Sequence record: MK250021.1
Strand: one strand, 5' to 3'
Length of the DNA stretch: 64,000 nt
In this document: positions 4,989 to 34,700 of the stretch, piece after piece
Layout of the letters: every line of letters starts with the position of its first letter
How positions within the stretch are numbered: position 1 is the first letter of the stretch
Notes under the pieces: model-generated
Told to the model about the DNA's origin: nothing
The model's database searches: none
Seen by the model: the letters and a program-made list of their open reading frames with translations, nothing else
Position numbers and translations under genes: made by a program

Positions 4989-4997
4989 CTATTAAAT

Positions 4998-5398: not shown

Positions 5399-5403
5399 AA
5401 TTT

Positions 5404-6100: not shown

Positions 6101-6174
6101 GGTTCTGTAGCTCAGTTGAACAGAGCAGTGCTCTTCTAAAGCACGGGTCGTGAGTTTGATCCTCACCAGAATCA
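6101..6174 (+). tRNA. tRNA-Arg(TCT)
   Basis: GGTTCTG/CAGAATC, GTGCT-CTTCTAA-AGCAC. Confidence 0.9.
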
Positions 6175-6219
6175 CATAATGGATTAAAGATAAATATATG
6201 AAACAATTAATTTTTATAT

Positions 6220-6516
6220 ATGATTAATCCTGAAGTAATTATCAGTTAGGAAGACGTGAAAATAATTGATAGTTATAAAATAAAATCTATTAAAAACATG
6301 AAATGTGTTATTAATAGTATACGTGAAAAATGTGATAAAACTTATGTTATTCATAAAAGGAGTATGTATAGTTTAATAAATGAATGGAGATCACATAATC
6401 TTCTTTATGATTTGCATATAAAAAGGGAATAGACAAAAGATGTGGATTTAGATAATGAAACATTATTCAGAAAAATATGTTATTCAATATTATCTATATT
6501 TTATCTACATTTTTAA
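6220..6516 (+). CDS. Conserved phage hypothetical protein (98 aa; 2 TAG=Gln)
   Basis: MINPEVIIS*EDVKIIDSY...EWRSHNLLYDLHIKRE*TKDVDLD; TAG at 6247 and 6430. Confidence 0.7.
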
Positions 6517-6523
6517 TATATAA

Positions 6524-6786
6524 CGAGAGTTAGTAGTATAGCATTGTCCGGACCATTATTAAAAGTTTTAATTATTTCTTTTAGTAATGATATGCTGATT
6601 TAAATTATAAATAAATAGATTTAAAAAATAATTATGAATATAAGTAATTTAACCTTATATTTAAGAGAGACTGAAAGATTATTTTAATCTATTGATAATT
6701 AGTTTCAGGAGTTGAATATAGTTTTAATCATGATATGTAGTTCTATTAAAATAAACTTCATGATATAGGAAGTATATGTTTTCTCG
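6524..6786 (+). ncRNA. Putative multi-hairpin ncRNA of about 260 nt
   Basis: CGAGA/TCTCG closing stem; CATTATTAAAAG/CTTTTAGTAATG, AATATAAG/CTTATATT, CTGAAA/TTTCAG and ATCATGA/TCATGAT hairpins. Confidence 0.3.
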
Positions 6787-6851
6787 GTAAAGTATACGCC
6801 TGAATATTAGAATAAAAAGAATAGTGTCCGTAGATAAACTATTCAAATTTT

Positions 6852-7066
6852 GCTTCGATAGTTCAGTTGGTTAGAACGTCTGACTGTATACAGGAAACAA
6901 CCTGATTAAATTAAACTACATAATGCTGTTAGGTATCAGACTTGCGGACGCAATATTGATTTATAACTATTATAGTAATAAATTTAAATCGCTGAAAGTT
7001 TAGTTGGTTCGAATCCAATTTATGTAGCTAATCAGAAAGTCGTAGGTTCGAGTCCTACTCGAAGCG
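6852..7066 (+). tRNA. Interrupted tRNA-Asn(GTT): 5' half 6852-6887, 141-nt insert 6888-7028, 3' half 7029-7066
   Basis: GCTTCGA/TCGAAGC, G73. Joining ...TCTGACTGT to TAATCAGA rebuilds TCTGA-CTGTTAA-TCAGA, identical to the arm of tRNA-Asn at 2474. Confidence 0.8.
6916..7028 (+). ncRNA. tRNA-like element nested inside the tRNA-Asn insert
   Basis: Own acceptor CTACATA/TATGTAG, D-like CTG/CAG, T arm GTTGG-TTCGAAT-CCAAT; no canonical anticodon arm. Confidence 0.6.
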
Positions 7067-7071
7067 CAAAT

Positions 7072-7728
7072 ATGAGAGAAAAAGAATGTCGTATATGCCA
7101 TATTCATGGTAATACATTATTTTCTTTATATACATATAATAATAAAATACATTGGGTATGTAATAAATGTTAGACAGAATATGTATAGCGACGTCGAGAA
7201 CATTTAAAATTATTATCAGTTGCATATAAAGGAAATAAATGTCAATGTTGTGGATATAATAAATGTATATCTGCATTAGAATTTCACCATATAGATCCTA
7301 ATAAAAAAGAGTTTGGAATAGGATATGCAGGTTATACACATGGATGGAATGATGTTAAATTAGAATTAGATAAATGTATTTTAGTATGCGCAAATTGTCA
7401 TAGAGAAATACATGCTAATATAATAAAATGCCCAACTGAAATTATAAAAGATGAAGAAAATGTTAATATTTTATTAAATAAATTTAAATTTGATTCTATA
7501 AATAGGAATAATGATTATAAAAAATTAGTTGAAAAAATAGAACCAATTAAAAATTATACAATTCCTACAAAAGAAGAATTAATACAATTATTTAAGAAAT
7601 ATATTACATTTGAAAATATTGGTAGATTATATGGTATTACAGGAAATGCCATTAAAAAATGGTGTAAAAAATATGATTTACCATATAAATCAAAAGAATT
7701 AAAAGAATATATAAATAAATTACCATAA
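7072..7728 (+). CDS. Free-standing HNH homing endonuclease (218 aa; 2 TAG=Gln)
   Basis: CNKC*TEYV*RRREHLK...YKGNKCQCCGYNKCISALEFHHIDP...KCILVCANCHREIH; absent from the ORF track because of TAG. Confidence 0.85.
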
Positions 7729-7872
7729 ACGTCATGAGCCTTCTTAGAAAAAGGCGGTTTTAGTAACTGTACGAAGTATGTTAATACACGTGGTTAATAT
7801 ATATTTCAATAAGGGAAATTATAATGGATGTTGGCTAAGCAACTTCTTATATACGGTAATTTTTTAATATTT

Positions 7873-7976
7873 GGGAATATCTTCTCGTTGGTATGAGAAC
7901 TCTACGGTAAGTAGAGTGCATTTGCAAACCGGTTGAAATGATCTTGCTTCACAGTGTTCGAATCCTGTTGTTCCCA
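7873..7976 (+). ncRNA. Atypical tRNA-like RNA with extra arms
   Basis: GGGAATA/TGTTCCC, TTCTC/GAGAA, CTCTAC/GTAGAG, T loop TTCGAAT with bulged stem; anticodon not assignable. Confidence 0.45.
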
Positions 7977-8076
7977 CAAATATTTTGAAAATATTTTTGA
8001 TAAATATATAGACTTTACTATAAAGATTACATATAATAATTATGAATTGAAAATAATTAAGATACGCAAATTAACT

Positions 8077-8148
8077 GGTGGGTTCGTATAGCGGTTAGTA
8101 CTAGAGATTTTCATTCTCTAAACAGGAGTTCGACTCTCCTACCCACTA
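8077..8148 (+). tRNA. tRNA-Glu(TTC)
   Basis: GGTGGGT/ACCCACT, AGAGA-TTTTCAT-TCTCT. Confidence 0.9.
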
Positions 8149-8160
8149 CTAATCAATAAT

Positions 8161-9156
8161 ATGAAATAGAATTTAGAATTTTTATCAGATGACGAATTAA
8201 TATAGGAATATAGAAATTGTAATTATTCTTTAAAAGCAGTTGATAAGAAATATAATAAATCTGGAAATACTTTATTACGATTATTTAGAAAACGTAATAT
8301 AGATTATAATAAGATAAAGAATGATTATTTATTACAATAGAAACAATTTGAAGAAAGTAAAGTTTTATATTGTGAGAATTGTGGTAAAGTAATAGATGGT
8401 TATTATGGTTCTGGAAGATTTTGTAATAGATATTGTGCAACTGCATATGGCAATTCACATAGAGCAAAAAGAACAGAAGAATCAAAAAAGAAAACATCTA
8501 TTAGTGTAAAAAATTCTATTAAATGTTAGATAGCTGCTGAACGTTCAAGAAAAATATATTAGTGCAAATATTGTAATAAAGATTTTTCTGTGTTTGATAT
8601 ACGCAATATTAGAGGAAGAACATATTGTTCAAAAGAATGTAAACACAAATATTTATCTGCACATACTGGTGGTTATCGAGAAGGTTCTGGAAGAGGCAAA
8701 CAAGGATGGTATAAAGGAATTCATTGTGATAGTTCATGGGAATTAGCATTTCTTGTTTATTATAAAGATCATAATTTAAATATAGAACGTTGTAAAGAAA
8801 AAAGGTCTTATATTTGGAATAATGAAGTTCATTCATATTATCCTGATTTTATAACAGATGACGGGATAATAGAAATAAAAGGATATTCTACAGATTAGTG
8901 GAAATTAAAAGAAAACTAGAATCCGGATGTAAAAGTTTTATATAAAGATGATATAAAACCATATTTAGATTATGTAATAAATACATATGGTACTGATTTT
9001 ATTAAATTATATGATGGTTATAATCCAAAATTAGATTTGAAAAATTATACTTATGTATGGGTTCATAATGAAAAAGAGAATCATATGATTAGAACAGAAT
9101 TATATGATGAATATATAAATAATGGTTATATAAGAGGAAGAAAAACTTTTAAATAA
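8161..9156 (+). CDS. Free-standing PD-(D/E)xK (TnsA-N-like) homing endonuclease with Zn-finger repeats (331 aa; 7 TAG=Gln)
   Basis: CENCGK..GSGRFC, CKYC..YCSKEC, CDSSWELAF, YYPDF..IIEIKGY; frame open to TAA 9156 under code 15. Confidence 0.8.
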
Positions 9157-9233
9157 AAAATAGTTAAAAATAAACAAGATTTTAAATTTACGTTATTAAA
9201 TTAAAAAGTTTCTTTATGAAATTAATTTTAAAT

Positions 9234-9314
9234 ACTCCTATAGGCGAATTGGTCTAGCCACTAGATTAAGGATCTAGGTTTAATTACGTCTCGGTTCGAG
9301 TCCGAGTAGGAGTA
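9234..9314 (+). tRNA. tRNA-Leu(AAG)
   Basis: ACTCCTA/TAGGAGT, A73, GGC/GCC D stem, CTAGA-TTAAGGA-TCTAG, extended variable arm. Confidence 0.85.
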
Positions 9315-9395
9315 CAATAATAATATAAAATATTTTCTTATTTTATTATCAATTTCAAAAATAAATTAGATAAATAATAAGTTGAAATAATTTAT

Positions 9396-9468
9396 GCTGG
9401 ATTAGCACAGTTGGTAGTGCGACGCACTTGTAATGCGTAGGTCGTTGGTTCGAATCCGACATTCAGCT
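9396..9468 (+). tRNA. tRNA-Thr(TGT)
   Basis: GCTGGAT/ATTCAGC, ACGCA-CTTGTAA-TGCGT. Confidence 0.92.
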
Positions 9469-9566
9469 CAACATAACTTAATAATGTTTTTATATTGCTG
9501 AATAATTTGTTAGCAGTGAATAAGGCATTTAGGTTATATCTGAAAAGATATGATTTAGAGTAATCA

Positions 9567-9775
9567 ATATTAAGAAGCATAAAGTTGAATTAGCCACAGT
9601 TGGCCAACTGTGAGTGACGTAAGAAAGGTCAAATCGTTTTAATGGAATGATGCTTGTAGCCTTTGAAGGTAATCAATCCTTCCTACATAAGAAGTTAGCG
9701 TCATGAACTAACTTGTAGTGACTGAATAATGTGCTTAATATGTAATGAGGTTTGATGGTAGTCAGGAATCCATCT
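9567..9775 (+). ncRNA. Putative multi-hairpin ncRNA
   Basis: ATATTAAG/CTTAATAT closing pair; perfect 18-nt palindrome CACAGTTGGCCAACTGTG (9595-9612); GAAGG/CCTTC, AAGTTAG/CTAACTT, GATGG/CCATC. Confidence 0.4.
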
Positions 9776-9809
9776 ATGAATTCATTATTATTTTTATGTT
9801 TTTATATAT

Positions 9810-9883
9810 CGCGCCTTGGAGCAGTTGGTAGCTCGCCAGGCTCATAACCTGGAGGTCCCTGATTCAAGTTCAGGAGTGCGCAA
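9810..9883 (+). tRNA. tRNA-Met(CAT), initiator-like (C1xA72) with a bulged acceptor stem
   Basis: CCAGG-CTCATAA-CCTGG, fMet-type D arm GAGC-AGTTGGTA-GCTC. Confidence 0.8.
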
Positions 9884-10005
9884 CTAGTATGATGCATTTA
9901 TTTTATGAATATAGATAACTGTTCGCGATTGTGTATCTATAAAGTAATATTATAAATGAGGAAATATGAATGACAGTGATAATAATTGTACAATAAAACA
10001 CTGCA

Positions 10006-10075
10006 TCCTGTTTGTTGTAACGAAAGCATTTTCTCTTGAAAAGTGAAGGTTACGGTTTAATTCCGTAGACAGGAA
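10006..10075 (+). tRNA. Degenerate tRNA, probably Lys(CTT)
   Basis: TCCTGTT/GACAGGA, TACGG-TTTAATT-CCGTA, loop CTCTTGA; weak D arm. Confidence 0.5.
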
Positions 10076-10216
10076 CAAATTTTAATAGTCTATATTTAAT
10101 TATATAGAATCGTAACTACAAGAACATTAAATATTTTTAGTGGAAAGTCTTGGAGACCATCGTATTGGTACTGAGTTATAAGGTTCTCACAGAGTATAAA
10201 CCTTAATTTTTTGTTT

Positions 10217-10302
10217 GGAAAGGAAATTGCGACGGCTCGCAAGCTTGTCTTGAAAACAAGTCGTACAGTGAAATGTATGGGGATCGACACCTCTCCTTTC
10301 CG
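10217..10302 (+). tRNA. tRNA-Ser(TGA)
   Basis: GGAAAGG/CCTTTCC, G73, CTTGT-CTTGAAA-ACAAG, long variable arm. Confidence 0.85.
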
Positions 10303-10396
10303 CATTTTGTTTTACATATTTAAAAGCATTATATATATTATAAATATATAATGCTTTTAATTTTTATATAAATATTGAAATTTATTTTATTCACTT

Positions 10397-11389
10397 ATGA
10401 ACAAATATATAAAGCAATTAGTTGAATATTATTTTCATAACGAAAAAGAATTATATGAAAACAATTATAGAAAATTTAGAGAGAATTTTAATTGGTCTTA
10501 TGAAAGACGATTATTATATCAATATAATAATGATGTAGATTTTGATAATATAGTAAATGAAGAATATCATATAAGTGATGTTTTTGATGATGTTATAGAT
10601 GTTATAGGAAATATTTATAAGGATAATATAGATATAAGTAATGATATAAAAGTATATACAGGATATAATTTTAATATAAAAGATTCTTTATGTAAAAAAC
10701 TAGATAATGAAAATATAAAATATCCTATATATGTTTATATATTAAACGATACAGAATCAACTTCATATTCATATATAAAAAGTGAAGATAAGAATAATAA
10801 TGAAATTGTTATATATTTAAATTCATATATGATATAGGATAATATATAGTTATTACGTGATTCATGTAAACATGAGTTTTTACATATTAGAGAAATGTAT
10901 GCATTAGAAGATAAAGATGTTTTATAGTCTAATAAAAATAAATTACCTGATGATGAAAAAAATCCTTTTATCTGGGATAATCCAAATTATTTTGATAAAA
11001 GTTTAAGATTATGTTATATATTTAATAAGTCTGAAGAAAGAGCAAGATTAAATGCAGTATATGAACATATTAAATCAGAAGATGAAGATATTGATTCATT
11101 AAATAATATAACGTTATTAAACGAAATGAAATAGTGTATAAACACATTAAGAACTATTTTTATTTCTAATAATTATGGACCTATGGAAATATATAATTAC
11201 TCATGCTATAAATATCATTTGATAAAATATAAGTTAAACAAATATCATTTTGATTATAGACCAAGATTATCTGAATATTCATAGGATGACAAAGATAAAT
11301 TTCAGGCAATGATATTTGAGTTACAAACAAATTATAGAAAATTCAAATAGGATATAAAGAAAATAATTTATAATAAATTTCATAAATAA
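10397..11389 (+). CDS. Hypothetical protein with HExxH zincin-like motif (330 aa; several TAG=Gln)
   Basis: Reads through TAG 10835 into CKHEFLHIREM and stays open to TAA 11389. Confidence 0.7.
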
Positions 11390-11420
11390 TTATGGATAGT
11401 TTTGATAAAGAAATAAAGAT

Positions 11421-12194
11421 ATGAATATAATAGGAAATTATATATATGGTTCAGAAGATTCAACTGATGTAGATATTGCATATATAGTTGATGAATTACC
11501 ATCATTACAAGAATGTAAAAAGTTTTGTTCGGCTGATAAGAATGAAAACAGAAACTTAATAACGATAAATAACGGTATTATAACTAATTGTTATAAAGGA
11601 ACAGTTGATGAATTAAATAATGCGATATTAGATACATATAAGTTACATGAACAAAATACAGAATTACTTATTAATAGAAAGGTTGGTAGAGATATACCAT
11701 TGAAACTTATTAGAGCAATACGTGCAATGTTATCACATCTTTCTAGATCGCAATATAGAAAAGAAATAAAATTAGCATTAAGAAGTAATTGGTATAAGAG
11801 GTTAGACGTATTATTAAGTATTAATTTAGAATATATTGATTTTGATAAATTAAACAATAATATGTCAAGAGAAGATATATTGAAATTATTTGCATTTCAA
11901 ATAGGTCAATGTATGGGACTTATATATGCAAGAAAAGAATTATATACAAAAAATGATGTTATTACATGGATAGGCAGTAATCTCGGTTATTGTCTTGATG
12001 ATTATTTAAAACGAAAATATACAAGTTTAAATATATTAAATTATTTAAAAGATAAATTAATCTACCAGATTCGTTATAATTTTCCAGCAATAGAGTGTGA
12101 TAATAATATAGTAAAATTTTTAAAGGACGGACATAATAAATATTATGATTTAATGCAGGAATGTCAAATAAATATTGAAAATAAAGATATTTAA
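11421..12194 (+). CDS. Putative nucleotidyltransferase (Pol-beta superfamily)
   Basis: N-terminal YIYGSEDSTDVDIAY (GS..DxD) motif. Confidence 0.55.
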   Translation: MNIIGNYIYGSEDSTDVDIAYIVDELPSLQECKKFCSADKNENRNLITINNGIITNCYKGTVDELNNAILDTYKLHEQNTELLINRKVGRDIPLKLIRAIRAMLSHLSRSQYRKEIKLALRSNWYKRLDVLLSINLEYIDFDKLNNNMSREDILKLFAFQIGQCMGLIYARKELYTKNDVITWIGSNLGYCLDDYLKRKYTSLNILNYLKDKLIYQIRYNFPAIECDNNIVKFLKDGHNKYYDLMQECQINIENKDI

Positions 12195-12197
12195 TAT

Positions 12198-12584
12198 ATG
12201 AAGTTGATTTATAACAATATTATTCCTCCACATGGATTTATAGCTATTAATATTTTTGGAAATCTTTTTGTAAGGAAAGAATATGAATATAAATTAAAGA
12301 ATGATAATTATAAGAAAAGAGTATTAAATCATGAATCTATCCATACAGAATAGATGAAAGATTTTGCAAGTTTTTTACCAGAATGTATATAGCAATATAT
12401 AGGAGGAATAATATTTTATATAATATATTTCTTTGAATGGTTATGGAGAGTTTTATTTACAAAACATAGATTTTCACATTAGGCATATAGAAATATAACA
12501 TTTGAATAGGAAGCCTTTGCAAATGAATCAGATTTAGAATATTTAAGTAAACGAAATCATTTTGATTAGTGGAAAATATATTAA
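12198..12584 (+). CDS. Bacteroidetes-type HExxH membrane-associated protein (128 aa; 5 TAG=Gln)
   Basis: MKLIYNNIIPPHGFIAINIFG..NHESIHTE*MK..YFFEW..AYRNITFE*EA; TAG at the usual Q of HExxHxxQ. Confidence 0.8.
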
Positions 12585-12588
12585 TATA

Positions 12589-12620
12589 AAAAGGATGTTA
12601 ATTAAGTTTAACATCCTTTC
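12589..12620 (+). terminator. Rho-independent terminator
   Basis: AAAGGATGTTA/TAACATCCTTT hairpin followed by a T-rich run. Confidence 0.65.
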
Positions 12621-12639
12621 TTTTTTCATATAAACAATG

Positions 12640-12647
12640 TATCTTTG
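12640..12647 (+). promoter_or_regulatory. Bacteroidetes -7 promoter element
   Basis: TATCTTTG about 45 nt upstream of ORF 12693, directly after a terminator. Confidence 0.6.
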
Positions 12648-12692
12648 TAACTGTATAAATGAAGTAATAATTAATTAAAAATTATAATAATT

Positions 12693-13049
12693 ATGGTAGA
12701 TCGTTTAAATCAAGAGTTAGAGCTGGATGACTTGGTACTTATTGCGCATCCAAAAGTTTCAACATTGCTACGTTGCATTGTTACCAAGATCAATGCAAAG
12801 ACAGTCACAGTAGCAGCACTCCCCGAGAATGACAAAGAGAATGAGGCTGCACAATATTGCCAACATAATATGGCTGCTATAGGCGATCACAAGTTTCATG
12901 GAAACTATTTCAGAATAACAAAAGGATTCAATCGTCGTCCTGAGGAAGTTGTGAAGATTGGTCATTATCAAACAGTGCAAGACAATGGCAAAGATGTTCA
13001 TTACTCTATTGTTGAAGTTGGTGATGAAGAACTTTGGCCAACTGATTAA
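12693..13049 (+). CDS. Hypothetical protein
   Basis: 118 aa, TAG-free, A-rich leader. Confidence 0.7.
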   Translation: MVDRLNQELELDDLVLIAHPKVSTLLRCIVTKINAKTVTVAALPENDKENEAAQYCQHNMAAIGDHKFHGNYFRITKGFNRRPEEVVKIGHYQTVQDNGKDVHYSIVEVGDEELWPTD

Positions 13050-13065
13050 TAATTAAATATAAATA

Positions 13066-13317
13066 ATGATTATGCAAAATATAGCAAATGAAATAAAAAA
13101 TAGTAGTATAAAATTTCATAGTAATAAATTAAATGGATTAGTAGATATGGTTATGTCTAATAATTCTAGTAATAAAATAGAATTACTACCAATTAATGAT
13201 AGAGCATTAATTTATACTATGTATTGGTGTACATCTGAACATAGTAATCTATCAAGATATGAATTTGATAGGCTATTAGAAATGTCAAGGAAATTACGTA
13301 ACTATTTAAATGAGTAA
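13066..13317 (+). CDS. Hypothetical protein
   Basis: 83 aa in a tightly packed run. Confidence 0.6.
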   Translation: MIMQNIANEIKNSSIKFHSNKLNGLVDMVMSNNSSNKIELLPINDRALIYTMYWCTSEHSNLSRYEFDRLLEMSRKLRNYLNE

Positions 13318-13630
13318 AATAATGGTAATAAATAATTCAAATATAAATAATTATATTGCGTTTGCAAGTGAGAAAGTATTGAATTATATTAAAGATTTTA
13401 ATTCATACTTTGATGCTGATGAAGTATATGACATTTTAAAAGAGTTATCTGAATATGATGTGAATATTATGAAATTTAATAAATATATCGGATTTCTTGT
13501 ATGTCAAGTGTATAAGGATTTTATTAATAATGAGATGATTATTGAAAAAAACACAGATTTTCAAAATTTCATTATTCCTATCATTATTAATATAAGTGAT
13601 AATATTTTAAAAGATAAGATTGAACTATGA
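13310..13630 (+). CDS. Hypothetical protein
   Basis: 106 aa, overlaps the previous stop. Confidence 0.6.
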   Translation: MSKIMVINNSNINNYIAFASEKVLNYIKDFNSYFDADEVYDILKELSEYDVNIMKFNKYIGFLVCQVYKDFINNEMIIEKNTDFQNFIIPIIINISDNILKDKIEL

Positions 13631-13773
13631 CGGACGAACAATTAAAGAAGATATATGATAAGATTAATGAGTTGGTAGACACTGTTAATAAATTAAAAAG
13701 TATTATTGCAACTCAAGATAATAAGATAAGAATATTAGAGATTAAGTTAAATAATGTAGAAAATATATTGTAA
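13627..13773 (+). CDS. Small coiled-coil hypothetical protein (48 aa)
   Basis: ATGA overlap; MTDEQLKKIYDKINELVDTVNKLK... Confidence 0.55.
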   Translation: MTDEQLKKIYDKINELVDTVNKLKSIIATQDNKIRILEIKLNNVENIL

Positions 13774-14135
13774 TGATAAGTAGTATAATTTTAATGTTAT
13801 GTTTTTATATGTTTATTATTTCATTAACATATCATAGAGATATTCAGGTAATAAACATATTTAATTTTTTTGGACCCATAGAATATACTATAAGATATAT
13901 TGAAGAATTTGACAATGATTCAAAAATATCAAGAAAATACTATAAAATTTATTGGAATTACTTCAGTATTTTGCCATTTTTTCGCAATTTTTTGAGTAAA
14001 ACTGATAATCAGATAGTATATACTGTAAATGATGAAACTGAGTTAATTTCCAACTATTTTGTAACATATGAGTCCGCTAGAAATTTCTTATATAAGACAA
14101 GAGATTTCACTAAATTTATATTAAATGAAGAATGA
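13773..14135 (+). CDS. Hypothetical protein with N-terminal hydrophobic segment
   Basis: 120 aa, coupled TAATG start. Confidence 0.55.
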   Translation: MISSIILMLCFYMFIISLTYHRDIQVINIFNFFGPIEYTIRYIEEFDNDSKISRKYYKIYWNYFSILPFFRNFLSKTDNQIVYTVNDETELISNYFVTYESARNFLYKTRDFTKFILNEE

Positions 14136-14518
14136 AAAATATATTTAAAATAATTAAATTACTTTTCTTTTCAAAGTAGTATGTGATATATGCTGTTGAT
14201 AAAAAGGGAGAACAAGTAAAAGAATAGTCTAGCAATATTAATGAAACGTTTTGTCACCATATATATGATGATGCAAGATAGACTTTAATTAATACTGTTG
14301 GTGAACAAACATATGGTGAAAAATTAGAATCATATGAACCAGATTTATTTAACGCATATAAAGAATCAGATTATCAAATAGCAAAATCTGAATATTTGCA
14401 AGCAGAATTAGATTACTATAAATTAGTGAATAACCCGATGAGTGGTGACGCTAATATATTATTCACAAGTTATTAGCGATTACAATAGCTAAAGAAACAA
14501 TATGAAAATTTTTAGTAA
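14132..14518 (+). CDS. Hypothetical protein (128 aa; 6 TAG=Gln)
   Basis: ATGA-coupled start; open to TAA 14518, which overlaps the next ATG. Confidence 0.7.
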
Positions 14519-14883
14519 TGATAAAGTTTAAACATAAAAAGTATAATAAAACTAATTTTGATACTATTAATGTAAAAACAGCTAAAGAAGTTTGTGATAT
14601 AATAATTAATAAGAAAACACAAGAACTTATTAAGAAATGTCCAAGAACATTTAATTATATTAATAATGCAATAAATGAATCTATACGTTTATATTTTACT
14701 TCATGTATTATTTACAATAATATATTAGATTATAATATAACATTAGATTTAAGCTGTATAAATTTTGATTTTATGAAAAAATCAAGATTTGATGTTATTA
14801 GCGATATATTAGAAGTGTATAGAAATAAAGGATATAAAATAATTCATAATGATAAAGATAAAATAACTATGTATTTTAATTAA
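14518..14883 (+). CDS. Hypothetical protein
   Basis: 121 aa, coupled start. Confidence 0.6.
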   Translation: MIKFKHKKYNKTNFDTINVKTAKEVCDIIINKKTQELIKKCPRTFNYINNAINESIRLYFTSCIIYNNILDYNITLDLSCINFDFMKKSRFDVISDILEVYRNKGYKIIHNDKDKITMYFN

Positions 14884-14930
14884 TATATATAGACTTTATT
14901 AAAATTATATTATATAAATATATAGTTAAT

Positions 14931-15015
14931 GGAGAGTTAACCTAACGGGGTTAGGGACAATCTGCTAAATTGTTCGTCCATGTATGTGGATGTGGGTCGG
15001 GACCACAGCTCTCCG
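14931..15015 (+). tRNA. tRNA-Ser(GCT)
   Basis: GGAGAGT/GCTCTCC, G73, ACAAT-CTGCTAA-ATTGT, long variable arm. Confidence 0.85.
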
Positions 15016-15020
15016 CAAAA

Positions 15021-15430
15021 AATCCACAACAGATTTAAAGATGTAGTGGTCTATAAGTTCGTTCCTTAATGAGAGATTATCACATTATATATGTGCACAA
15101 AAGAAATAATGTGATGGACCATAGTGAATAGATTATCTTAATTTTGGTATCTTCCGCAAGATTCTGATTATTGATAGAAGGTAGTTAAGCTAATTTCATA
15201 TTCATTTCTATTACAGACGAAGAAAGAGGAACATTGTTTACAAGTAATAAAGAGTAACCAAATGTTATTGTTATATTGAAATGATATAATAATAGGTGAA
15301 TGAAACACTTGGCGCCAATATTAATAAAAGTGGTTGTTTATGAAAGTAATGTGTTTGATATAACGATCTGATTAACTCATAAAGTCAAACCGGTATATAT
15401 TAAGTTTATATATAAGATAGTAAGCTTATA
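15021..15430 (+). ncRNA. Putative large ncRNA of about 400 nt between two tRNAs
   Basis: TGGTC/GACCA enclosing ATCACATTA/TAATGTGAT; no credible ORF. Confidence 0.3.
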
Positions 15431-15438
15431 GATTTTAT

Positions 15439-15509
15439 TGGGATATATTGTAATGGTAGCAACAGGGTTTCTGAGTCCCTTAGTACTGGTTCGAATCCGG
15501 TTATCCCAA
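15439..15509 (+). tRNA. tRNA-Gln(CTG)
   Basis: TGGGATA/TATCCCA, loop TTCTGAG, ACTGG-TTCGAAT-CCGGT. Confidence 0.85.
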
Positions 15510-15560
15510 CATATTCGTAATTTTTATTTTTTATTTTTAAAGGATTTATACATAAAGAGA

Positions 15561-15595
15561 AAAGGTTAATAAGATTTATTTCTTATTAACCTTTA
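15561..15595. terminator. Bidirectional terminator
   Basis: AAAGGTTAATAAGA/TCTTATTAACCTTT between convergent units. Confidence 0.7.
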
Positions 15596-17109: not shown

Positions 17110-17793
17110 ATGAAACATTACGATTCAATAGATAATATAAAATATAATACAGAATTAGTAGGTGAACAGGTATGGGCATTTAATAAATTGGATGGACAAA
17201 ATTTTTGTGCTAAATATTCTGTAAAGAAAAAAGAATTTACAAATTTTGGTTCAAGAAAATGTATGGTAGATGAGACATCAGAACAATTTGGTGATGCTGT
17301 ACGTTATTTTAAATCACATAATTATTCATCTATATTAAGTAATATAGTTGAAAAACATAGGAGAAAGAAAGATATATTTTGTGGTGTTGATGAAATTACG
17401 TTTTTCTTCGAATGGTATGGTGATCATAGTTTTGCAGGATTTCATTCTGAAGAAGATAAAGATAATATGCATCTTGCATTAATTGATGTGTTCATCAAAA
17501 AGAAGGGATATATTGAACCAAAGATATATATGGATCTATTTAGAGATTGTGGAATAGAATTGCCGCAATTAGTTTATACGGGACCATTATCAAATGATTT
17601 TATTAAAGATATTCAAGAAAATGACTGGGCTGAACCAAATTGTAAATTTCCTTATGTAAAGGAAGGTGTTGTAATAAGGAGATCTACTATTTTAAAAGGA
17701 CAACGAATGCCTAAAGTAAAAGTTAAAACAAAATGGTGGTTAACAGAATTGCATAAGAGATATACAGAAGAAGAATGTAAATTATTAGAGTAA
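17110..17793 (+). CDS. ATP-dependent RNA ligase (Rnl2-like adenylyltransferase domain)
   Basis: Motif I KLDGQN, FFEWYG, LIDV, KEGVVIR, VKVKTKW. Confidence 0.8.
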   Translation: MKHYDSIDNIKYNTELVGEQVWAFNKLDGQNFCAKYSVKKKEFTNFGSRKCMVDETSEQFGDAVRYFKSHNYSSILSNIVEKHRRKKDIFCGVDEITFFFEWYGDHSFAGFHSEEDKDNMHLALIDVFIKKKGYIEPKIYMDLFRDCGIELPQLVYTGPLSNDFIKDIQENDWAEPNCKFPYVKEGVVIRRSTILKGQRMPKVKVKTKWWLTELHKRYTEEECKLLE

Positions 17794-17795: not shown

Positions 17796-18248
17796 ATGAC
17801 AACAGGTGAATTAGACGAAATTGTAAAAGATATTATTAATATTTTTGGTAAACATATAAAGCTTGCAAGTTTATCAGGAAAATCATATGCAACAGGACAT
17901 GAAAATTATTATGATATAGTGTTTGAGAATACTACATCATTTACTTCACGAATGTTCGGTTATCAATATAGAAAGTTCCTTAATAATCTTGCAAGTTTAA
18001 CTAATGGTGAAACAAGAAAAACAAATTCATATAAAGGATTTGTATATTATTGGTTTCCTGGATTTATTTACAAGAAAAATAATTTAAGAATTGAATTTGG
18101 AAGGAAAGGTTGGAATAGACATAGTGGTGATGATTCAACTACATGTTTTTATATGACGACTAATAACAAATATATTATTGAAGAAATTGTTAATAATATA
18201 TTAAGAGATAGAGATATACGTATTTTAAAGAAGAATGATTATGAATAA
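17796..18248 (+). CDS. Hypothetical protein
   Basis: 150 aa within the operon. Confidence 0.65.
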   Translation: MTTGELDEIVKDIINIFGKHIKLASLSGKSYATGHENYYDIVFENTTSFTSRMFGYQYRKFLNNLASLTNGETRKTNSYKGFVYYWFPGFIYKKNNLRIEFGRKGWNRHSGDDSTTCFYMTTNNKYIIEEIVNNILRDRDIRILKKNDYE

Positions 18249-18888
18249 TAAACCAACATTAGTGATTCCAAAAGGTAGGTTATATACAGGAATTAAACAT
18301 ATGTTTAATGTATGTAATATTGATATGCCTGATGAGAATACTAGACAATATTATTTTCCTAATTGGAGTGATGATTGTTCATTATTCATTGCAAAACCTA
18401 AAGCAATACCAGAATTAATTGCAAGTAAATTCTGTGAATTCGGTATGTGCGGATATGATATTATAAAGAATAGTGAATATGAAAATGATATAGAGCTCAT
18501 TAAACACACAGGACTAAATAGAGTAAAAGTATGTTTAGCTTCACGATATAATATTGATGAATTGTGTCATATGAATAAACCAGTTATTTGTGCCACTGAA
18601 TTTGATGTGTTAGCAAATCATTATTTTACAAAATTAGGAATTCCGCATTATATATTAAATACAGCAGGTTCAACAGAAGGATATATTGATATTGGTGCAG
18701 ATTGTATTATTGATGTTGTAGAAACAGGGAAAACACTTAAAGAAAATAATATTAATATATTAGATACACTGATTGATACTGATACATGTATATTTGAACA
18801 TGCATCATTAATGGATGCAATGTTACCATCAAATATACAAATAATTTATGATCAATGGATTAATAAGACATGGGAAACGAGAATGTAA
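18235..18888 (+). CDS. hisG: ATP phosphoribosyltransferase-like (short-form HisG, no C-terminal regulatory domain)
   Basis: IPKGRLY, KPKAIPELI, GMCGYDII, ATEF, GSTEGY, ADCIIDVVETGKTLKEN. Confidence 0.85.
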   Translation: MIMNNKPTLVIPKGRLYTGIKHMFNVCNIDMPDENTRQYYFPNWSDDCSLFIAKPKAIPELIASKFCEFGMCGYDIIKNSEYENDIELIKHTGLNRVKVCLASRYNIDELCHMNKPVICATEFDVLANHYFTKLGIPHYILNTAGSTEGYIDIGADCIIDVVETGKTLKENNINILDTLIDTDTCIFEHASLMDAMLPSNIQIIYDQWINKTWETRM

Positions 18889-19331
18889 AATATATAGTAG
18901 AATTTGATGGTAATGATGGCACAGGAAAAACTTATACGATAAAAGTATTATCAAAAGTTTTTCCTAACTGCATTTTTATAGATAGAGGATTATTCAGTAA
19001 AGCAACATTGCTATCAGACGAAAATGATGAAATGTATAAGTATATTGATGATAATATTGATATGAATAGAATTTATATTATATTGGATGATTATCCAGAA
19101 CATTGTCAAATGCTTATAAAAAGAAGAGGAGATTCTATTGAAGAGAAATATCATACAATAGAAGATTTAGAGTATTATCGTAAACAATTTACAAACTTAT
19201 ATGGTTATTGTTGTAAAAAGAATTATGATAATGTTTATTTAGTTACACGATTATTACCAGATCATGTTCAGGTAATGATTGATATTATTAAGAAATTTAC
19301 TAATTTTAATAAGGAAAATAATAATGAGTAA
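18870..19331 (+). CDS. Nucleoside monophosphate kinase (thymidylate-kinase-like P-loop)
   Basis: EFDGNDGTGKT Walker A, FIDRG motif, IKRRG lid. Confidence 0.75.
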   Translation: MGNENVKYIVEFDGNDGTGKTYTIKVLSKVFPNCIFIDRGLFSKATLLSDENDEMYKYIDDNIDMNRIYIILDDYPEHCQMLIKRRGDSIEEKYHTIEDLEYYRKQFTNLYGYCCKKNYDNVYLVTRLLPDHVQVMIDIIKKFTNFNKENNNE

Positions 19332-19974
19332 AATAATTATTGGTACCAGTAATCCAGGTAAGATTAGAGAAATTGCATCTATTCTTTCACCATTAGGATA
19401 TGAGATTGAACCGCATGCATTGGATGTTGATGAAACAGGAAAGACTATTAAAGATAATGCTATTATAAAAGCAAAAGCATATAGTAATGTATTTCCAGAT
19501 ACTTATGTTATTGCAGAAGATAGTGGATTAGTCGTTCCTAAATTGAATAATCTTCCTGGTCCGTATTCAGCAAGATTTCATGAAATTACAATAGATGATA
19601 ATTTGAATGTTATAAATGTTCCACATGAAGAATTTACTACGGATAAATCTGAACATGATAAACTTAATAATGAGAAGTTGTTGAAGTATATTAAAGATAT
19701 TCCGTTTGATGAGCGTGCAGCATATTTTGAAGTATGTTTTGTCATTGCAAAGAATGGAATTATTCAAGAAACATTTAGTGGTTATTCATATGGTTATATA
19801 GCAGATGAATTACGTGGAACAAATGGATTTGGTTATGATCCATTGTTTATTGGTGAGAATACATTTGGTAAGACATATGCAGAACTAGATTCTGCAAGAA
19901 AGAATTTAAAGAGTCACAGAAAGCAAGCATTGAAACAATTGGGCCTTTGGGTTTCACAGAATATAGAGAATTAA
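19324..19974 (+). CDS. rdgB: Non-canonical purine NTP pyrophosphatase (RdgB/HAM1 ITPase)
   Basis: GTSNPGK, ETGKTIKDNAIIKA, AEDSGL, PGPYSARF, GFGYDPLF, KSHR; start at ATG 19324. Confidence 0.9.
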   Translation: MSKIIIGTSNPGKIREIASILSPLGYEIEPHALDVDETGKTIKDNAIIKAKAYSNVFPDTYVIAEDSGLVVPKLNNLPGPYSARFHEITIDDNLNVINVPHEEFTTDKSEHDKLNNEKLLKYIKDIPFDERAAYFEVCFVIAKNGIIQETFSGYSYGYIADELRGTNGFGYDPLFIGENTFGKTYAELDSARKNLKSHRKQALKQLGLWVSQNIEN

Positions 19975-19980
19975 TAATAT

Positions 19981-20472
19981 ATGAAGAAATTTATTTTTCC
20001 AGGTTCATTTGATCCTTTTACAAATGGGCATAAAGCAATAGTAGATCAGACATATAAATTGTGTGATGAATTTATTATAGCATTAGCGACAAACTTAAAG
20101 AAAGGAGAAGGACTTATTAAACGTCCTGAGCGTATTAAGTTAATTAAAGAGATTTTTAAAGATTATCCGAATGTAAAGGTAATTGATATGACAGATACCT
20201 TGATTTCTGATTATTGTAAAAAGAATGGAGTTTCTTATATTGTTAGAGGTATCAGAAATTCGGAAGACTTTACATATGAAAAATCATTGGCAGCTACTAA
20301 CCATTATTTGGCAGGAGTAGAAACTATGTTGGTAATGGGTTTTTGCGAACCATATAATATTGATATTTCATCTACATTCGTTAGAGAATTGGTACATTAT
20401 AAATTACCTATTGGTGAGTTTGTTCCACCAGTTGTTGAACAATATATTAAAGATAATAATTTAACATGGTAA
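19981..20472 (+). CDS. coaD: Phosphopantetheine adenylyltransferase-like (CoaD; HxGH nucleotidyltransferase)
   Basis: FPGSFDPFTNGH, RGIRNSEDFTYE, ISSTFVREL. Confidence 0.85.
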   Translation: MKKFIFPGSFDPFTNGHKAIVDQTYKLCDEFIIALATNLKKGEGLIKRPERIKLIKEIFKDYPNVKVIDMTDTLISDYCKKNGVSYIVRGIRNSEDFTYEKSLAATNHYLAGVETMLVMGFCEPYNIDISSTFVRELVHYKLPIGEFVPPVVEQYIKDNNLTW

Positions 20473-21335
20473 ATAAGATTCAAGAAGAAGATTTAAAAGC
20501 AGTTGAGTATTGTAAAACTGTATTATATCCTAAATGGAATATCAAAGATTTGTATTCTATAGATTTTGATACATTTAGAAAAATGCCGTTGGTTGTAGAA
20601 GGTGAAAGTAAAGAGATACGTGCATTGGATGATGATTATTGTATCATTTATTTTAAACCTACAATTTATTCATTTACATATAATAGAACTGGTATTGTAG
20701 AAGGAAGTAATATTCCACGTGTTCATGTAAGTAAAGTATTGTGTGAGTTACTTAAAGAAAATGGTATTAAACATGCATATCTAGATTATGGTGATGAATT
20801 TGTATTAGCACGCATAATTAAAGATACACCTAATATTGAAGTTGTTGTAAAAGCAAATCATACAGGTACAAGTAAACATAGATATTTTGGTATGGGTAAA
20901 TCACATGTAAGAATGTCACATCCATATTATTCGGGAATGGAAATTAAAGACATGGAACCATATCCAGCACCTATTGTAAGATTTGATTGGCGAAATCCAT
21001 TTTGGGAACCAAATACACATAAGATGTTAGCTGATGAAGTTATGTGCGATGATCAAGCAGATTATTATATTGATGTTAAGAAAGCAAAGAAAACTGCAGC
21101 ACTAACATTCAGTGTATTAAGTGATTTTCTTGCAAGTAAAGATATTGTTATTTATGATTTGTGTTTGTTTATATCAGAAGATGGTGAAACAGTATATGGA
21201 GAAATTTCACCAGATTGTGGAAGATATAGACATTATGATTTAGGAAGTCTTGATAAGGATGTATGGCGTGCAGGAGGTTCATCAGATCAGGTATTGGAGA
21301 AGTGGAATTTACTGTATAAAATGATTACACAATAA
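20466..21335 (+). CDS. purC: Divergent SAICAR-synthetase (PurC) family protein
   Basis: VEGESKEI, IEVVVKAN.TGT, GEISPDCGR, LDKDVWR; several canonical PurC motifs are altered. Confidence 0.75.
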   Translation: MVNKIQEEDLKAVEYCKTVLYPKWNIKDLYSIDFDTFRKMPLVVEGESKEIRALDDDYCIIYFKPTIYSFTYNRTGIVEGSNIPRVHVSKVLCELLKENGIKHAYLDYGDEFVLARIIKDTPNIEVVVKANHTGTSKHRYFGMGKSHVRMSHPYYSGMEIKDMEPYPAPIVRFDWRNPFWEPNTHKMLADEVMCDDQADYYIDVKKAKKTAALTFSVLSDFLASKDIVIYDLCLFISEDGETVYGEISPDCGRYRHYDLGSLDKDVWRAGGSSDQVLEKWNLLYKMITQ

Positions 21336-21585: not shown

Positions 21586-21620
21586 AAAAGTCACTAAAAT
21601 AAAAACTTTAGTGACTTTTT
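21586..21620 (+). terminator. Rho-independent terminator
   Basis: AAAAGTCACTAAA/TTTAGTGACTTTT. Confidence 0.7.
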
Positions 21621-30690: not shown

Positions 30691-31731
30691 ATGGCTGGCA
30701 AGAAATTACTTAATGGTGTTTATATAACAAAGAAAATAATGGAAGCTTTTAATCTTAAAGATTATCAGGCTGCTGGATTTGCTGGTTGTTTTATGGAAGA
30801 ATCTGGTTGTGATCCCGGTGCATATAATGCCGCTGAAAAATCTGGAAGATTTAAAGGTTCATCAGCGAACGGTGCAGGTTATGGTGCAGGTCTTGCATAG
30901 TGGTCTAATGCATGGAAACGGTAGATATAGAGATAGTTTAATAATTCAAGGCCTATAGAAAATTGGACATTAGATTAGCAAATAGCTATTGTTACTAAAG
31001 GCTGTTCATAGTCTTTTGTAAATTTATTAAGAAAATGTACATCAGTAGGTTAGTCTACAGATATTGTTTTAAGAGGATATGAAAATGGTTCTGCAGGTAA
31101 AGGTACTAAATTACGTTCATAGCAATCAATGAAAGCATATACGTGGTGTAAGACATCATATATGGCAGATGGTAGTAGACGTACGTTTAGTGATGGATAT
31201 ATTGGTGCATTAACATGTAGAACATCATGGGCTAATGCAGTTTTAAGTAAAATGGGATCAGTTAATCTTGCAGATTTATCCGGATTAGGAACAGAAGTAG
31301 GTGGAGGATTAGGTGATGATGGCTCTTTTGGTTCTACTGGTGGAGGAGGAACTGGAGATTCAAACGCATATCCTGTTCATGATGAATATGAAACATTTAC
31401 TGGACAAGGTGGAAATATATTTGCAAATGCAAAAGATAATGCATTTCAATTAGCTGCTGATGCATCAAAATCTAAATTTTCATCTAAAGATTCTGAAGCA
31501 TCTAAGCATACACGTATATATTCTACAAATGATTCTTGTATTGTTTTAGATGAATTAAGTATACCATATGATCCAAATGATCCAACTATTGAATATGCAA
31601 ATCAAAATGTAAAAGCGGAAGATGTTAAGAAAGATACATCTACTAATGCAAAAGATAATACTAAAGACACATCTACAAATAAAAGTACAAATAAATCTAA
31701 TACTACAAAAAAGACAACTAAATCTAAATAA
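30691..31731 (+). CDS. Phage tail lysozyme-like protein (346 aa; many TAG=Gln)
   Basis: QAAGFAGCFMEESG..GAGLA*WS (GLxQW)..LD*QI..GYE; C-terminal YPVHDEYET..TRIYSTND module. Confidence 0.8.
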
Positions 31732-31733
31732 TT

Positions 31734-34700
31734 ATGATTACAATAAATGGTATTAAATATTTAAAAAAAGGAGAGACATCAAATGATAAAACAATAACGC
31801 ATTATTATTATACAGATTCATTAAAGAAAACTTATAACATAATATATAATGGCAAAAATGCTAAATTATATACAGATACTAAAGTATACAAGGATTCTGA
31901 TACAAATTAGATTATAAAGAAAGATTTCTTTAATTATACTATTGATTACGGAACAGGAAAATATGGAGGTGTTTGTTATTCAAAATCAGATGAAGATAAG
32001 ATATTAGGTATGGTCGATTCTGATAGTAATATAGATGGAAGTTCTAATGGAGATTCTACAACTGATGGTGATAATAGTTCAAACTCTGGAAATAATTCTG
32101 ATGATTCTGATAATAATGACGGTAATAGTTCAAATAATGGTAATGGAACAGGTGATGATACAAATGATTCTGATAGTAATGGATCTGGTAATAAAGATAC
32201 TAATAATAAAGGTATATTTGAGGATTCAATGGGTAATAAAGATAAAGATAATCCTCGAAGTTCATTACCATTAGGAGCAGATATTAAAGATCCTGATGTT
32301 ACAGGTTTTAGCATTGATGAAGTAACAGCGCCACATCCACGAGAAAACAATTGGTATAATAAAGGTTCTGTTTGTCCAATAATACGTATAAATGATCATT
32401 ATTTTTCTGATACTGAAATATAGCATTTTTCTATGGAAACTGGATATTATAAGTATTTTTATGATTATCAAGTATACCAAGCACCGTTAACAGGTGTTTT
32501 ACCAACTATGAGGCTTATTGTTACAACAACAGATCCAGGTTTATTAAAGAAAGATTTTATAAAGCAAGGTGATAGATGTAATGTATTTTTCTAGAGTAAT
32601 CATTCTATGATTAAATCTATGAGATGTGATTTCAGAATTACTAATGTTGTAACAGATTAGTTAGATTAGACGTAGTATTAGAAATATCAAACATAGATTA
32701 TAACAGGTGAACTTTATGTCCCGGATTTAAGAAATGAAGAAACTCGTTATAATTTTAATGGTTCATCAAGAGATGCTATGATGGATTTGGCAAAGAGATT
32801 AAGATTAAGTTTTTTCTTTTGTGATCCTGATGATACTAATGATAAAATGGTTTGGTGTAATTGTAAAACACCTGAAATGTTCATTCATGATTTAACAACG
32901 CATGCATGGAAAAATTCTATATCATTCTTTGAATCTTGGATTGATCCACGTTATGGATTATCTTTTATGAATATTAATAGATTATTAGGTGAAGATGGAT
33001 TTGATGAATCAATAGATATGACATTCTGGACTAATACATTTATTAATAATAGATCAGTTGATGGAAAATCTGCAAATGAAACAGATACAGAATAGAAAAA
33101 TAGTACACATATTCAAACAAAATGTTTTACTAATATTATTAATGATAATGAATCTGCTACAGTATATCATGTTAATAGTTGGAGATTGGTTAATAATGCA
33201 TAGGAAATACAAGATTTTGTTGGATTGAATTGTAAAATGCAATATTCATCTGTTAATCCTGGATTATTATCAGATGAGAATAATAATCCAAATTATAGTG
33301 TAGAATTTTCATTATGTTTAAATAGAACTAAATTTGATCCAACTAAAAAGGATAATGATTTTTATGTATTATTAGGACCTGGTAGAAATATGACATATGC
33401 GAGTGGCGATGCCGCCATGGGAACATCTGAAACACAATCTTCAAATAAAAATGAACCTGAACAAGTTACAAATCAAATGTCTGATGGTGATGCAGATGCA
33501 ATGGATAGTACAGGAAATAATATGATGTCTTCTGGTAATACACATCAATTTTATGAAGTTGCTTATGAACATAATATGAGAAATTTACTATAGTTATAGA
33601 AATAGTATTTACTTGTAGAATTAAATGGTGCAAACTTAAGTATTGTTCGCGGTGAAAAAATGCCTATTGTATTAATGGATTTAAATAAAGCAGAACAAGC
33701 TATTAGAACTAGTCAAGCACGTACAAAAATAGAAGAATGTATGTATGAAGCTGAATCCGGTTGGTATATAATTGATGGTATTGAATGGGTTTTTGATCCT
33801 GATAATGATTAGGGACAAGGTACAAACTGGCGAACTAATGTGAAATTAGTTAGAAGAGAATGGCCAATACCATCAAAAATAAAAGATGCAAATGGTAATA
33901 CTGTTTCAAAAAATGTCGCAAATAGTATTGTTTTGGTAGATATTGGAAACGGACAATAGATAAGAATGGCTTATTATGATGCAGTAAAGAAATATAGTTA
34001 GGAAATAAAAAATGGTGATGTCAAAATATTAGGTGGAACAACATCTGAAGACGCAGTTGTAATTGGTCAGAAAAAACAAAACATATCTTCAACTAATGAT
34101 GAATAGAATTCAGATGATCTAGAAGAAAGTGGTAAATTATATACTGCAAATGGTGTAGAGACTGTAAGTGCAGTTAATTTTAATCTTGATTTAATGGATC
34201 AATATGTAAAAGATTCTGATTATGTTGGTTAGTCTACAATACCTTTAACTGGTTTGAAAGATTTTATGAAAAATATTTATAAAACAATATTATCTGAATC
34301 CGATAATAAATGTAAATTGGTATCTGGAAGACGGTGGGCAGTAGATGAATATGGTAATAAGGTAAATGGAAATGCGTTTGTAAAGAAATATGATTATTAT
34401 AAATGTATGAATGCTATAGGTGAAGTAATGTATTTTAAAAAAAATAATTCAAGTCATTTATATGGTGAAGCTATTGATATTATTAATAATGGTATAGATT
34501 TTACTGAACTTATGACTAATGTAATAATGAAATCACCTGCGATATTAAAATTATTTTATGATAATGGTGTTTCTGCTTATATAGAGCAAGCAAAGGATGA
34601 TACAGGCGCAACTACTAAACATTACCATATTGGAACTGATACAATAAAACAACGAGAATTTTGGGAATCTGTTAAAGCTATATTAGGTTCTGATATGATT

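Follow-up and report, generated by a model that had tools for sequence, protein, structure and literature searches.

In pentostatin biosynthesis, the HisG homologue PenA couples phosphoribosyl pyrophosphate (PRPP) to dATP or ATP, the adduct passes through the host enzymes HisI, HisE and HisA, PenC, a homologue of 5-aminoimidazole-4-(N-succinocarboxamide) ribotide (SAICAR) synthetase, converts the resulting intermediate, and PenB carries out a reduction (PMC11611020, PMC12648386). The adechlorin (ade) cluster encodes homologues of HisG (AdeC, AdeL), HisA (AdeK) and SAICAR synthetase (AdeA), and adechlorin biosynthesis is said to begin with a nucleoside monophosphate (PMC13055916). PenC-type enzymes leave the histidine pathway after HisA, at phosphoribulosylformimino-5-aminoimidazole-4-carboxamide ribotide (PRFAR; PMC11611020, PMC13055916). 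Here we analyse a block of five genes in a 64,000-nucleotide stretch of the Lak phage sequence record MK250021.1 (the window), which encode a HisG, a P-loop kinase-like protein, a HAM1/RdgB-type pyrophosphatase, a CoaD and an enzyme with the fold of SAICAR synthetase (PurC), hereafter PurC-like. All of these except CoaD belong to a conserved module that recurs in other viruses and in cells, and we weigh below what this module may make.

A conserved and mobile four-gene module

The five genes are tightly packed (Table 1): three of the four junctions overlap, by 19, 8 and 7 nt, and 6 nt separate the genes at the other. Each starts with ATG, stops with TAA and contains no in-frame TAG. Analysis of the open reading frames (ORFs) bore out this arrangement, which the initial annotation had reported. 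The window belongs to Prevotella phage Lak-B2/B4: the PurC-like protein matches sequence of Lak-B2 and of Lak-B4 at 100% identity, as against 93% for Lak-A and Lak-C. The ratio of non-synonymous to synonymous substitution rates between Lak-B and Lak-A was 0.21 for HisG, 0.33 for the kinase, 0.07 for HAM1, 0.02 for CoaD and 0.07 for the PurC-like gene; all five genes are under purifying selection.

Loci were gathered from a one-genome-per-species scan and from IMG/VR and annotated with purpose-built hidden Markov models, giving 61 non-redundant loci, 46 cellular and 15 viral. With neighbours at cellular loci counted on the same strand within 7 kb, HisG was found at 19/46, HAM1 at 22/46, the kinase at 18/46 and a HisA-HisI-HisE fusion (HisAIE) at 13/46. 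The corresponding numbers for viral loci were 11/15 (HisG), 6/15 (HAM1), 12/15 (kinase) and 2/15 (HisAIE). HisG adjoined or was fused to the PurC-like gene at 30 of the 61 loci, and HAM1 at 28. Several kinds of fusion protein occur, which join PurC-like to HAM1, to HAM1 and kinase, or to HAM1 and HisG, or combine kinase, HisG, PurC-like and HAM1; HisG, kinase and PurC-like; or HisA, HisI, HisE, HisG and PurC-like. The typical cellular order, HisAIE-HisG-PurC-like-HAM1-kinase, was seen in the Candidate Phyla Radiation (CPR), Myxococcales, Planctomycetia and Woesearchaeota. Two viral contigs (L050, L058) have the order HisG-kinase-HAM1-PurC-like, a 335-kb viral contig (L059) carries a complete set in the order HAM1-HisG-PurC-like-HisAIE, and a 481-kb viral contig (L069) encodes PurC-like, HisA, HisI, HisE and HisG as a single protein of 1235 aa. 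The GVMAG-named IMG/VR contigs L060-L066 encode HisG-kinase-PurC-like proteins of about 800 aa, with HAM1 not nearby. Carriers include huge phages, giant-virus contigs, CPR, DPANN, Myxococcota, Bdellovibrionota and Oligoflexia.

Since the genes that flank the block in Lak are not common to the other module-bearing phages, the four genes travel as a unit. HisG, kinase, HAM1 and PurC-like therefore form one conserved, mobile pathway module, which elsewhere is extended by the HisA-HisI-HisE fusion. The initial annotation had proposed that all five genes belong together and had named co-conservation in other phages as a check. The module does recur, beside one another or fused, in non-Lak viral contigs, and recurrent adjacency and fusion across the 61 loci support the unit for four genes, while CoaD falls outside it. 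CoaD was found only at Lak-type loci (4/61; 0/57 non-Lak loci), and relatives from outside Lak share no more than 41% identity with it and are not linked to the module. As CoaD is confined in this way, the conserved unit comprises four genes rather than five, and CoaD is a Lak-specific insertion, an unrelated passenger in the gene string. Its earlier casting as an activating adenylyltransferase is not upheld, given that none of the non-Lak loci has the gene and that its score is that of a standard pantetheine-phosphate adenylyltransferase (132.5 bits against TIGR01510, cut-off 103.3); we rejected it as a pathway enzyme on the same distribution.

The suggestion that the block is neither a histidine nor a purine operon holds. 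No further his or pur genes were found in the window, as had been noted, and HisA, HisIE and PurA, sought across the Lak records, are encoded in none of them. In the literature on phages, CPR and giant viruses, Lak papers included, we found no account of the module, which seems undescribed so far.

One remote branch of the PurC-like family, 35-40% identical, has a HAD phosphatase fused to it or encoded alongside (L032 9935-11440, L035 9935-11440, L039 7552-12350). In Bradyrhizobium, genes resembling methionyl-tRNA synthetase and genes for an aminotransferase and a P450 lie near this branch; in a Nostocales genome the neighbours include S-adenosylhomocysteine (SAH)-hydrolase-like and glutamine amidotransferase genes. 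The link to a HAD phosphatase fits a nucleotide product that is open to dephosphorylation, and these loci look like an uncharacterised nucleoside natural-product locus with a pathway ending in a free nucleoside.

The PurC-like family and its partner enzymes

The PurC-like protein scored 39.8 bits against PF01259 and 26.1 bits against the TIGR00081 equivalog, failing the cut-off of 189.9 for the latter. An exhaustive HMMER search of 1.84 billion sequences recovered 293 cluster representatives at E <= 0.001, so the bulk of canonical PurC was not reached. Relatives 55-77% identical to the Lak protein come from Myxococcales, Blastocatellia, Armatimonadetes, CPR and other phages, and no curated model was found for the family. 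The AlphaFold2 (AF2) model (predicted local distance difference test, pLDDT, 93.9) has the SAICAR synthetase fold, with template modelling (TM) scores of 0.68/0.80 at 26% identity. All 38 significant Foldseek matches (38/38, E <= 0.001) were to PurC or PAICS, at 14-27% identity and with TM-scores of 0.64-0.70 by query length and 0.80-0.84 by target length. The motifs GESK, FKPTIYSF and RFDWRNP, previously flagged as departures from PurC, are real and prove to be invariant or nearly invariant signatures across the family.

In human PAICS, Lys17, Lys191, Glu193, Asp207 and Asp133/137 hold ATP and magnesium ions, and Glu97, Asp212, Arg215, Lys228 and Arg232 bind the ribotide (PMC9376930). We mapped the active site from HMMER alignments to two archaeal PurC structures and from the family alignment; the human residue list was taken from PMC9376930 and its positions were matched by motif spacing, so that the residue-by-residue correspondence is inferential. 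On this mapping, the first five residues are replaced by E47, C233, F235, G245 and P178, and the second five are retained as E125, D250, R253, K264 and R268. In terms of motifs, GKxK has become GESK, the K and E of the D-x-K-x-E strand are C233 and F235, and the D that precedes E-I-S-P-D is G245. As the ribotide-binding residues are kept and those for ATP and magnesium are replaced, the protein is not a canonical PurC, in agreement with its TIGR00081 score and with what had been suspected from its motifs. Judged from these residues, it probably still binds an AICAR-type ribotide (AICAR, 5-aminoimidazole-4-carboxamide ribotide) and is probably not an ATP-dependent aspartate ligase. By sequence the family is sharply conserved, with a predicted PurC fold that lacks the ligase site. 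CofB reportedly turns the branch-point intermediate into 8-ketocoformycin 5'-monophosphate with no phosphorylated or adenylated intermediate, which would fit a PurC fold lacking ligase residues.

The HisG scored 111.6 bits against TIGR00070 (cut-off 75.75), covering profile positions 3-182 of 183, and its best matches in the PDB are HisG. It is the short form, without the C-terminal regulatory domain. We propose this protein as the putative entry enzyme of the module, and a short, regulator-free HisG fits an unregulated entry to a side pathway. Single-sequence family scans gave no match for the kinase-like protein. A profile of its module-linked relatives matched the thymidylate kinase 2pbr at 4.7e-9, and the top folds for its AF2 model (pLDDT 90.5) are thymidylate kinases and Fap7-type adenylate kinases (TM ~0.65). 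In other genomes this kinase is fused to HisG, HAM1 or PurC-like. The HAM1 protein, for which TTG at 19279 is an alternative start to ATG at 19324, scored 157.5 bits against TIGR00042 (cut-off 145.35). One of its Asp residues aligns with the catalytic Asp of E. coli RdgB, which has been changed to Ala in the mutant chain 2pyu; by score and by this residue, HAM1 scores as an active RdgB-type enzyme. Searches with PADLOC gave no match for HisG, HAM1, CoaD, PurC-like or two fusion proteins and one weak match for the kinase (mads_8, E 0.0025, 15.4 bits), and a PHROGs search of the module proteins returned weak or unannotated matches only.

Candidate pathway and alternative explanations

We favour a reading in which the module leads to PRFAR, which the PurC-fold enzyme converts to a ring-expanded phosphorylated purine nucleotide, with CoaD as a passenger; we hold it tentatively, as one that could well be right but that we would not yet call probable. 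The initial annotation had proposed that the pairing of HisG with a PurC-fold enzyme follows the logic of pentostatin and coformycin biosynthesis, and the fusions of these proteins to each other and to HisA-HisI-HisE speak for that view. HisG would join ATP (or dATP or another adenine nucleotide) to PRPP, as in the first step of histidine biosynthesis, and the HisE, HisI and HisA steps would then yield PRFAR; gene content and fusions argue strongly for both stages. As Lak encodes no HisA, HisI or HisE, it would depend on its Prevotella host for those steps. Since HisA is present within the fusions, the PurC-fold enzyme would act on or after the HisA product, and PRFAR is very probably its substrate. 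This enzyme is the proposed committed one of the module. Because the ATP and magnesium ligase residues are lost, it is predicted to rearrange or cyclise its substrate with no aspartate ligation, and by analogy its product may be a 1,3-diazepine, a purine nucleotide of the 8-ketocoformycin type that is kept phosphorylated. Analogy also suggests that the kinase would either supply the nucleoside triphosphate (NTP) substrate for HisG or raise the phosphorylation state of the product, and that HAM1 may keep 6-oxo-type purine triphosphates from polymerases, whether inosine triphosphate (ITP) and dITP or the triphosphate of the analogue itself. With kinase and HAM1 as conserved partners, the product is presumably held at the nucleotide level.

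Several observations weigh against the diazepine pathway. No reductase of the CofA/PenB type recurs beside the module at the 61 loci; none is seen in the Pfam tables of module neighbourhoods or among the window ORFs scanned, the latter as the initial annotation had stated. With no linked reductase, the pathway may never form the 8-hydroxyl to which coformycin owes its character as a transition-state analogue. Neither CofB, PenC or AdeA as named relatives nor any actinomycete was returned by protein searches with the Lak protein and the distant Nostocales member, by the exhaustive representatives, by cluster and plasmid searches or by the genome scan, and CofB and PenC were not recovered from the PDB by sequence, profile or fold. 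The likeness to CofB consequently comes from context and fold, not from demonstrated orthology. If both acted on the product, the kinase and the NTP pyrophosphatase of the module would seem to work against each other, PurA in or beside six CPR modules suggests ordinary purine interconversion, and host supply of the HisE, HisI and HisA steps has to be presumed for Lak. Free-living bacterial carriers count against any version in which the role is purely one of countering anti-phage defence.

The main competing explanation is purine interconversion or salvage that needs no deaminase: HisG, HisE, HisI and HisA would open the adenine ring, and the PurC-fold enzyme would reclose PRFAR or cleave it, giving IMP, ITP or AICAR. 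HAM1 would then take the triphosphate down to IMP, while the balance of AMP and ADP would be restored by the kinase and PurA. Those to benefit would be organisms that depend on scavenged nucleotides (phages, giant viruses, CPR/DPANN, predators), towards which the distribution is indeed skewed. The PurA found inside or beside the module at six CPR loci from several phyla (L012, L014, L016, L017, L018, L043) is canonical, about 40% identical to enterobacterial PurA and variable in position, and no other neighbour family is recurrent once the Lak and Myxococcales loci are set aside. Salvage would also agree with HAM1 scoring as a standard ITP/XTP pyrophosphatase and with the retained AICAR-type ribotide-binding residues. 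However, the route would spend six enzymes and PRPP on the job of a single deaminase, PurA runs in the opposite direction, and GuaA, GuaB and PurH are not recurrent neighbours among the loci. Lak, at ~26% G+C, needs more A rather than less, and a specialised nucleoside fits the P450, aminotransferase and SAH-hydrolase-like genes near the HAD-fused branch better than inosine or AICA-riboside does. We consider salvage unlikely.

A different new nucleotide, derived from PRFAR or from its precursor phosphoribosylformimino-AICAR phosphate (ProFAR) but not a diazepine, would be equally supported by the fusions and adjacency. It would be phosphorylated by the kinase, with HAM1 for self-protection. 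Its use might lie in signalling, in a cofactor-like function, in poisoning polymerases of the host or prey, or in supplying a precursor for nucleic-acid modification. The pairing of kinase and pyrophosphatase, which resembles phosphorylation-state control in other nucleotide-analogue systems, counts in its favour, as does the remoteness of the family from characterised proteins (no solved structure exceeds 27% identity). Yet the loci show no consistent link of the module to a gene for modification, a polymerase or a receptor, base replacement throughout a genome is implausible in Myxococcales or CPR, and diazepine formation is the sole reaction for which a PurC-fold enzyme is known to act downstream of HisA; such a nucleotide is, in our estimate, improbable. 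Far less credible still is a set of unrelated auxiliary genes, in which an ordinary HisG and a divergent PurC boost histidine and purine synthesis of the host beside a housekeeping HAM1, a deoxynucleoside monophosphate kinase and CoaD. Every gene does match a housekeeping family, and huge phages carry many genes of nucleotide metabolism (PMC6784885). Against this stand the recurrence of the fusions and the preserved adjacency of the genes in viruses and in different domains of life, the missing ATP and magnesium residues, the failed TIGR00081 cut-off, a family of 293 representatives that leaves the mass of canonical PurC out of reach, and the lack of other pur or his genes in Lak. A canonical PurC accompanied by HisG as auxiliary genes was accordingly rejected on scores, lost ligase residues and fusions.

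Should the diazepine pathway be correct, its nucleotide might, speculatively, inhibit adenine-nucleotide deaminases and so shield the adenylate pool of the virus, symbiont or predator; for phages, the deaminases of immune systems such as RADAR, Cad1 and Kongming might be among the targets, as the initial annotation had suggested. Coformycin 5'-phosphate has been cited as an inhibitor of AMP deaminase (PMC13733733), and bacterial immunity employs deaminases at the level of ATP and dAMP (PMC9994260, PMC11645235; Kongming, bioRxiv 10.1101/2024.12.20.629578). To protect the adenylate pool, it would be sensible to combine a phosphorylated inhibitor with an enzyme that clears ITP. That phages and eukaryotic viruses, ultra-small symbionts and predators share a pathway from ATP and PRPP to a phosphorylated, transition-state-type deaminase inhibitor directed at deaminase-based immunity or toxins, with HAM1 clearing inosine triphosphates, is nevertheless doubtful in our judgement. 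That free-living cells carry the module (CPR, DPANN, Myxococcota, Bdellovibrionota) implies that its function is not purely one of countering anti-phage defence. The carriers all live off other cells, which fits adenylate protection and fits nucleotide scavenging equally well.

If the pathway operates as proposed, phages and giant viruses would make their own nucleotide-analogue metabolite from an intermediate of primary metabolism, chemistry for which the only known examples to date are antibiotic clusters of actinomycetes, and small-molecule biosynthesis would join the counter-defence repertoire of viruses. It would also account for the fact, puzzling so far, that CPR and DPANN genomes have partial histidine pathways, define a new conserved enzyme family with a PurC fold minus the ligase site, and provide a mining signature for diazepine-type or ring-modified nucleotides far outside Actinomycetota. 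Even under salvage, the module would represent an undescribed, deaminase-independent route of purine interconversion.

Genomic setting and comparison with described systems

The window has a G+C content of ~26%. Two terminator-like hairpins bound the co-directional gene block (Table 1); five terminator-like sites were found in 7.5 kb against 1.1 expected, and a promoter scan gave promoter-like matches at or below chance frequency. Twelve frames of at least 300 aa in the window contain between 1 and 19 in-frame TAGs and are open only if this codon has a sense meaning, so recoding of TAG is visible elsewhere in the window, which is in line with the alternative code of these megaphages. The five genes without TAG are consistent with alternative coding that is limited to part of the gene set. 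The tRNA array contains no CTA anticodon within its stretch. At ~34000-36000, GC skew and AT skew switch sign and gene orientation changes from + to -, and this region may be a point of replication or transcription divergence.

The first of two RNA-ligase-family genes lies two genes upstream of HisG. The module-bearing phage contig L050 also has an RNA-ligase-domain gene upstream, for which phmmer similarity to the window gene was undetectable. A TelA-domain gene lies shortly downstream of the module in L050 (11137-12375), with one 73-aa ORF between, and a TelA-like gene is present in the window. The 274-aa ORF near the start of the window matches a phosphoribosyltransferase domain weakly at its C-terminus (PF00156, 25.7 bits, slightly below cut-off) and gave no match in a PDB sequence search; an enzyme that uses or makes PRPP would bear on a HisG-based pathway.

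Table 1. Coordinates of features in the 64,000-nucleotide window of MK250021.1
Feature	Position	Strand	Basis or remark
ORF, 274 aa	48-872	+	weak PF00156 match
tRNA array, 20 genes	1187-15510	+	includes three Ile, two Met, two Lys, two Gln
Frame with in-frame TAG	8122-9156	+	open only if TAG is sense
Terminator-like hairpin, other end of co-directional gene block	15561-15594		partner of site 21586-21619
RNA-ligase-family gene	17110-17793	+
HisG, short form, putative entry enzyme, 217 aa	18235..18888	+	TIGR00070, PF01634, PDB HisG matches
P-loop kinase-like protein, minimal, 153 aa	18870..19331	+	profile of relatives, fold of model
HAM1/RdgB-type non-canonical purine NTP pyrophosphatase, 216 aa from ATG	19324..19974	+	TIGR00042
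CoaD, pantetheine-phosphate adenylyltransferase, 163 aa	19981..20472	+	TIGR01510
PurC-fold (SAICAR-synthetase-like) enzyme, 289 aa	20466..21335	+	PF01259, AF2 fold
Terminator-like hairpin, 13-bp stem, T-rich tail, end of co-directional block	21586..21619	+	terminator scan
Frame with in-frame TAG	31728-34823	+	open only if TAG is sense
DHH-family phosphoesterase	34866-35831	-
TelA/tellurite-resistance-like gene	51831-52952	-
Frame with in-frame TAG	56203-57366	-	open only if TAG is sense
RNA-ligase-family gene	57436-58947	-
DnaB-like helicase fragment	59884-61074	-	frame runs on across in-frame TAGs

Canonical PurC and the SAICAR synthetase domain of human PAICS share their fold and ribotide-binding residues with the PurC-like protein. 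They differ from it in sequence (at most 27% identity), in the residues for ATP and magnesium and in genomic context, as the partners of PurC-like are of the his rather than the pur type. Among phages, the PurZ/MazZ/DatZ set underlies 2-aminoadenine genomes. Like the module, that set involves a purine enzyme repurposed by a phage, control of the phosphorylation state by an NTP pyrophosphatase, and reliance on the host for the other steps. Its chemistry is different, however, and the module is also cellular, which makes base replacement implausible, and has no polymerase or dATPase partner. The Lak HAM1 belongs to the same family as RdgB/ITPA and the Kongming protein KomB, with the same tie to adenine and inosine nucleotides. 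In KomB, a dITP sensor, His replaces the catalytic Asp (bioRxiv 10.1101/2024.12.20.629578), whereas the Lak protein retains it.

The closest likeness is to the actinomycete core for pentostatin, coformycin and adechlorin, which, like the module, combines a dedicated HisG homologue, a SAICAR-synthetase fold and the chemistry of HisE, HisI and HisA. The ade cluster shares in addition a dedicated HisA homologue, as in the HisA-HisI-HisE fusions of the module, and the branch after HisA. No named CofB/PenC relative was recovered, and common descent of PurC-like with those enzymes is conjectural. The actinomycete core includes a short-chain dehydrogenase (PenB/CofA), while the module links HAM1 and a P-loop kinase instead; the actinomycete product is a secreted nucleoside, while that of the module presumably remains a nucleotide. 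The carriers differ too, being huge phages, giant-virus contigs, CPR/DPANN and predatory bacteria rather than actinomycetes. In kind, then, the module would belong with the known biosynthesis of nucleotide analogues from a branch of the histidine pathway, and what is new lies in its viral and symbiont carriers and in its set of partner genes.

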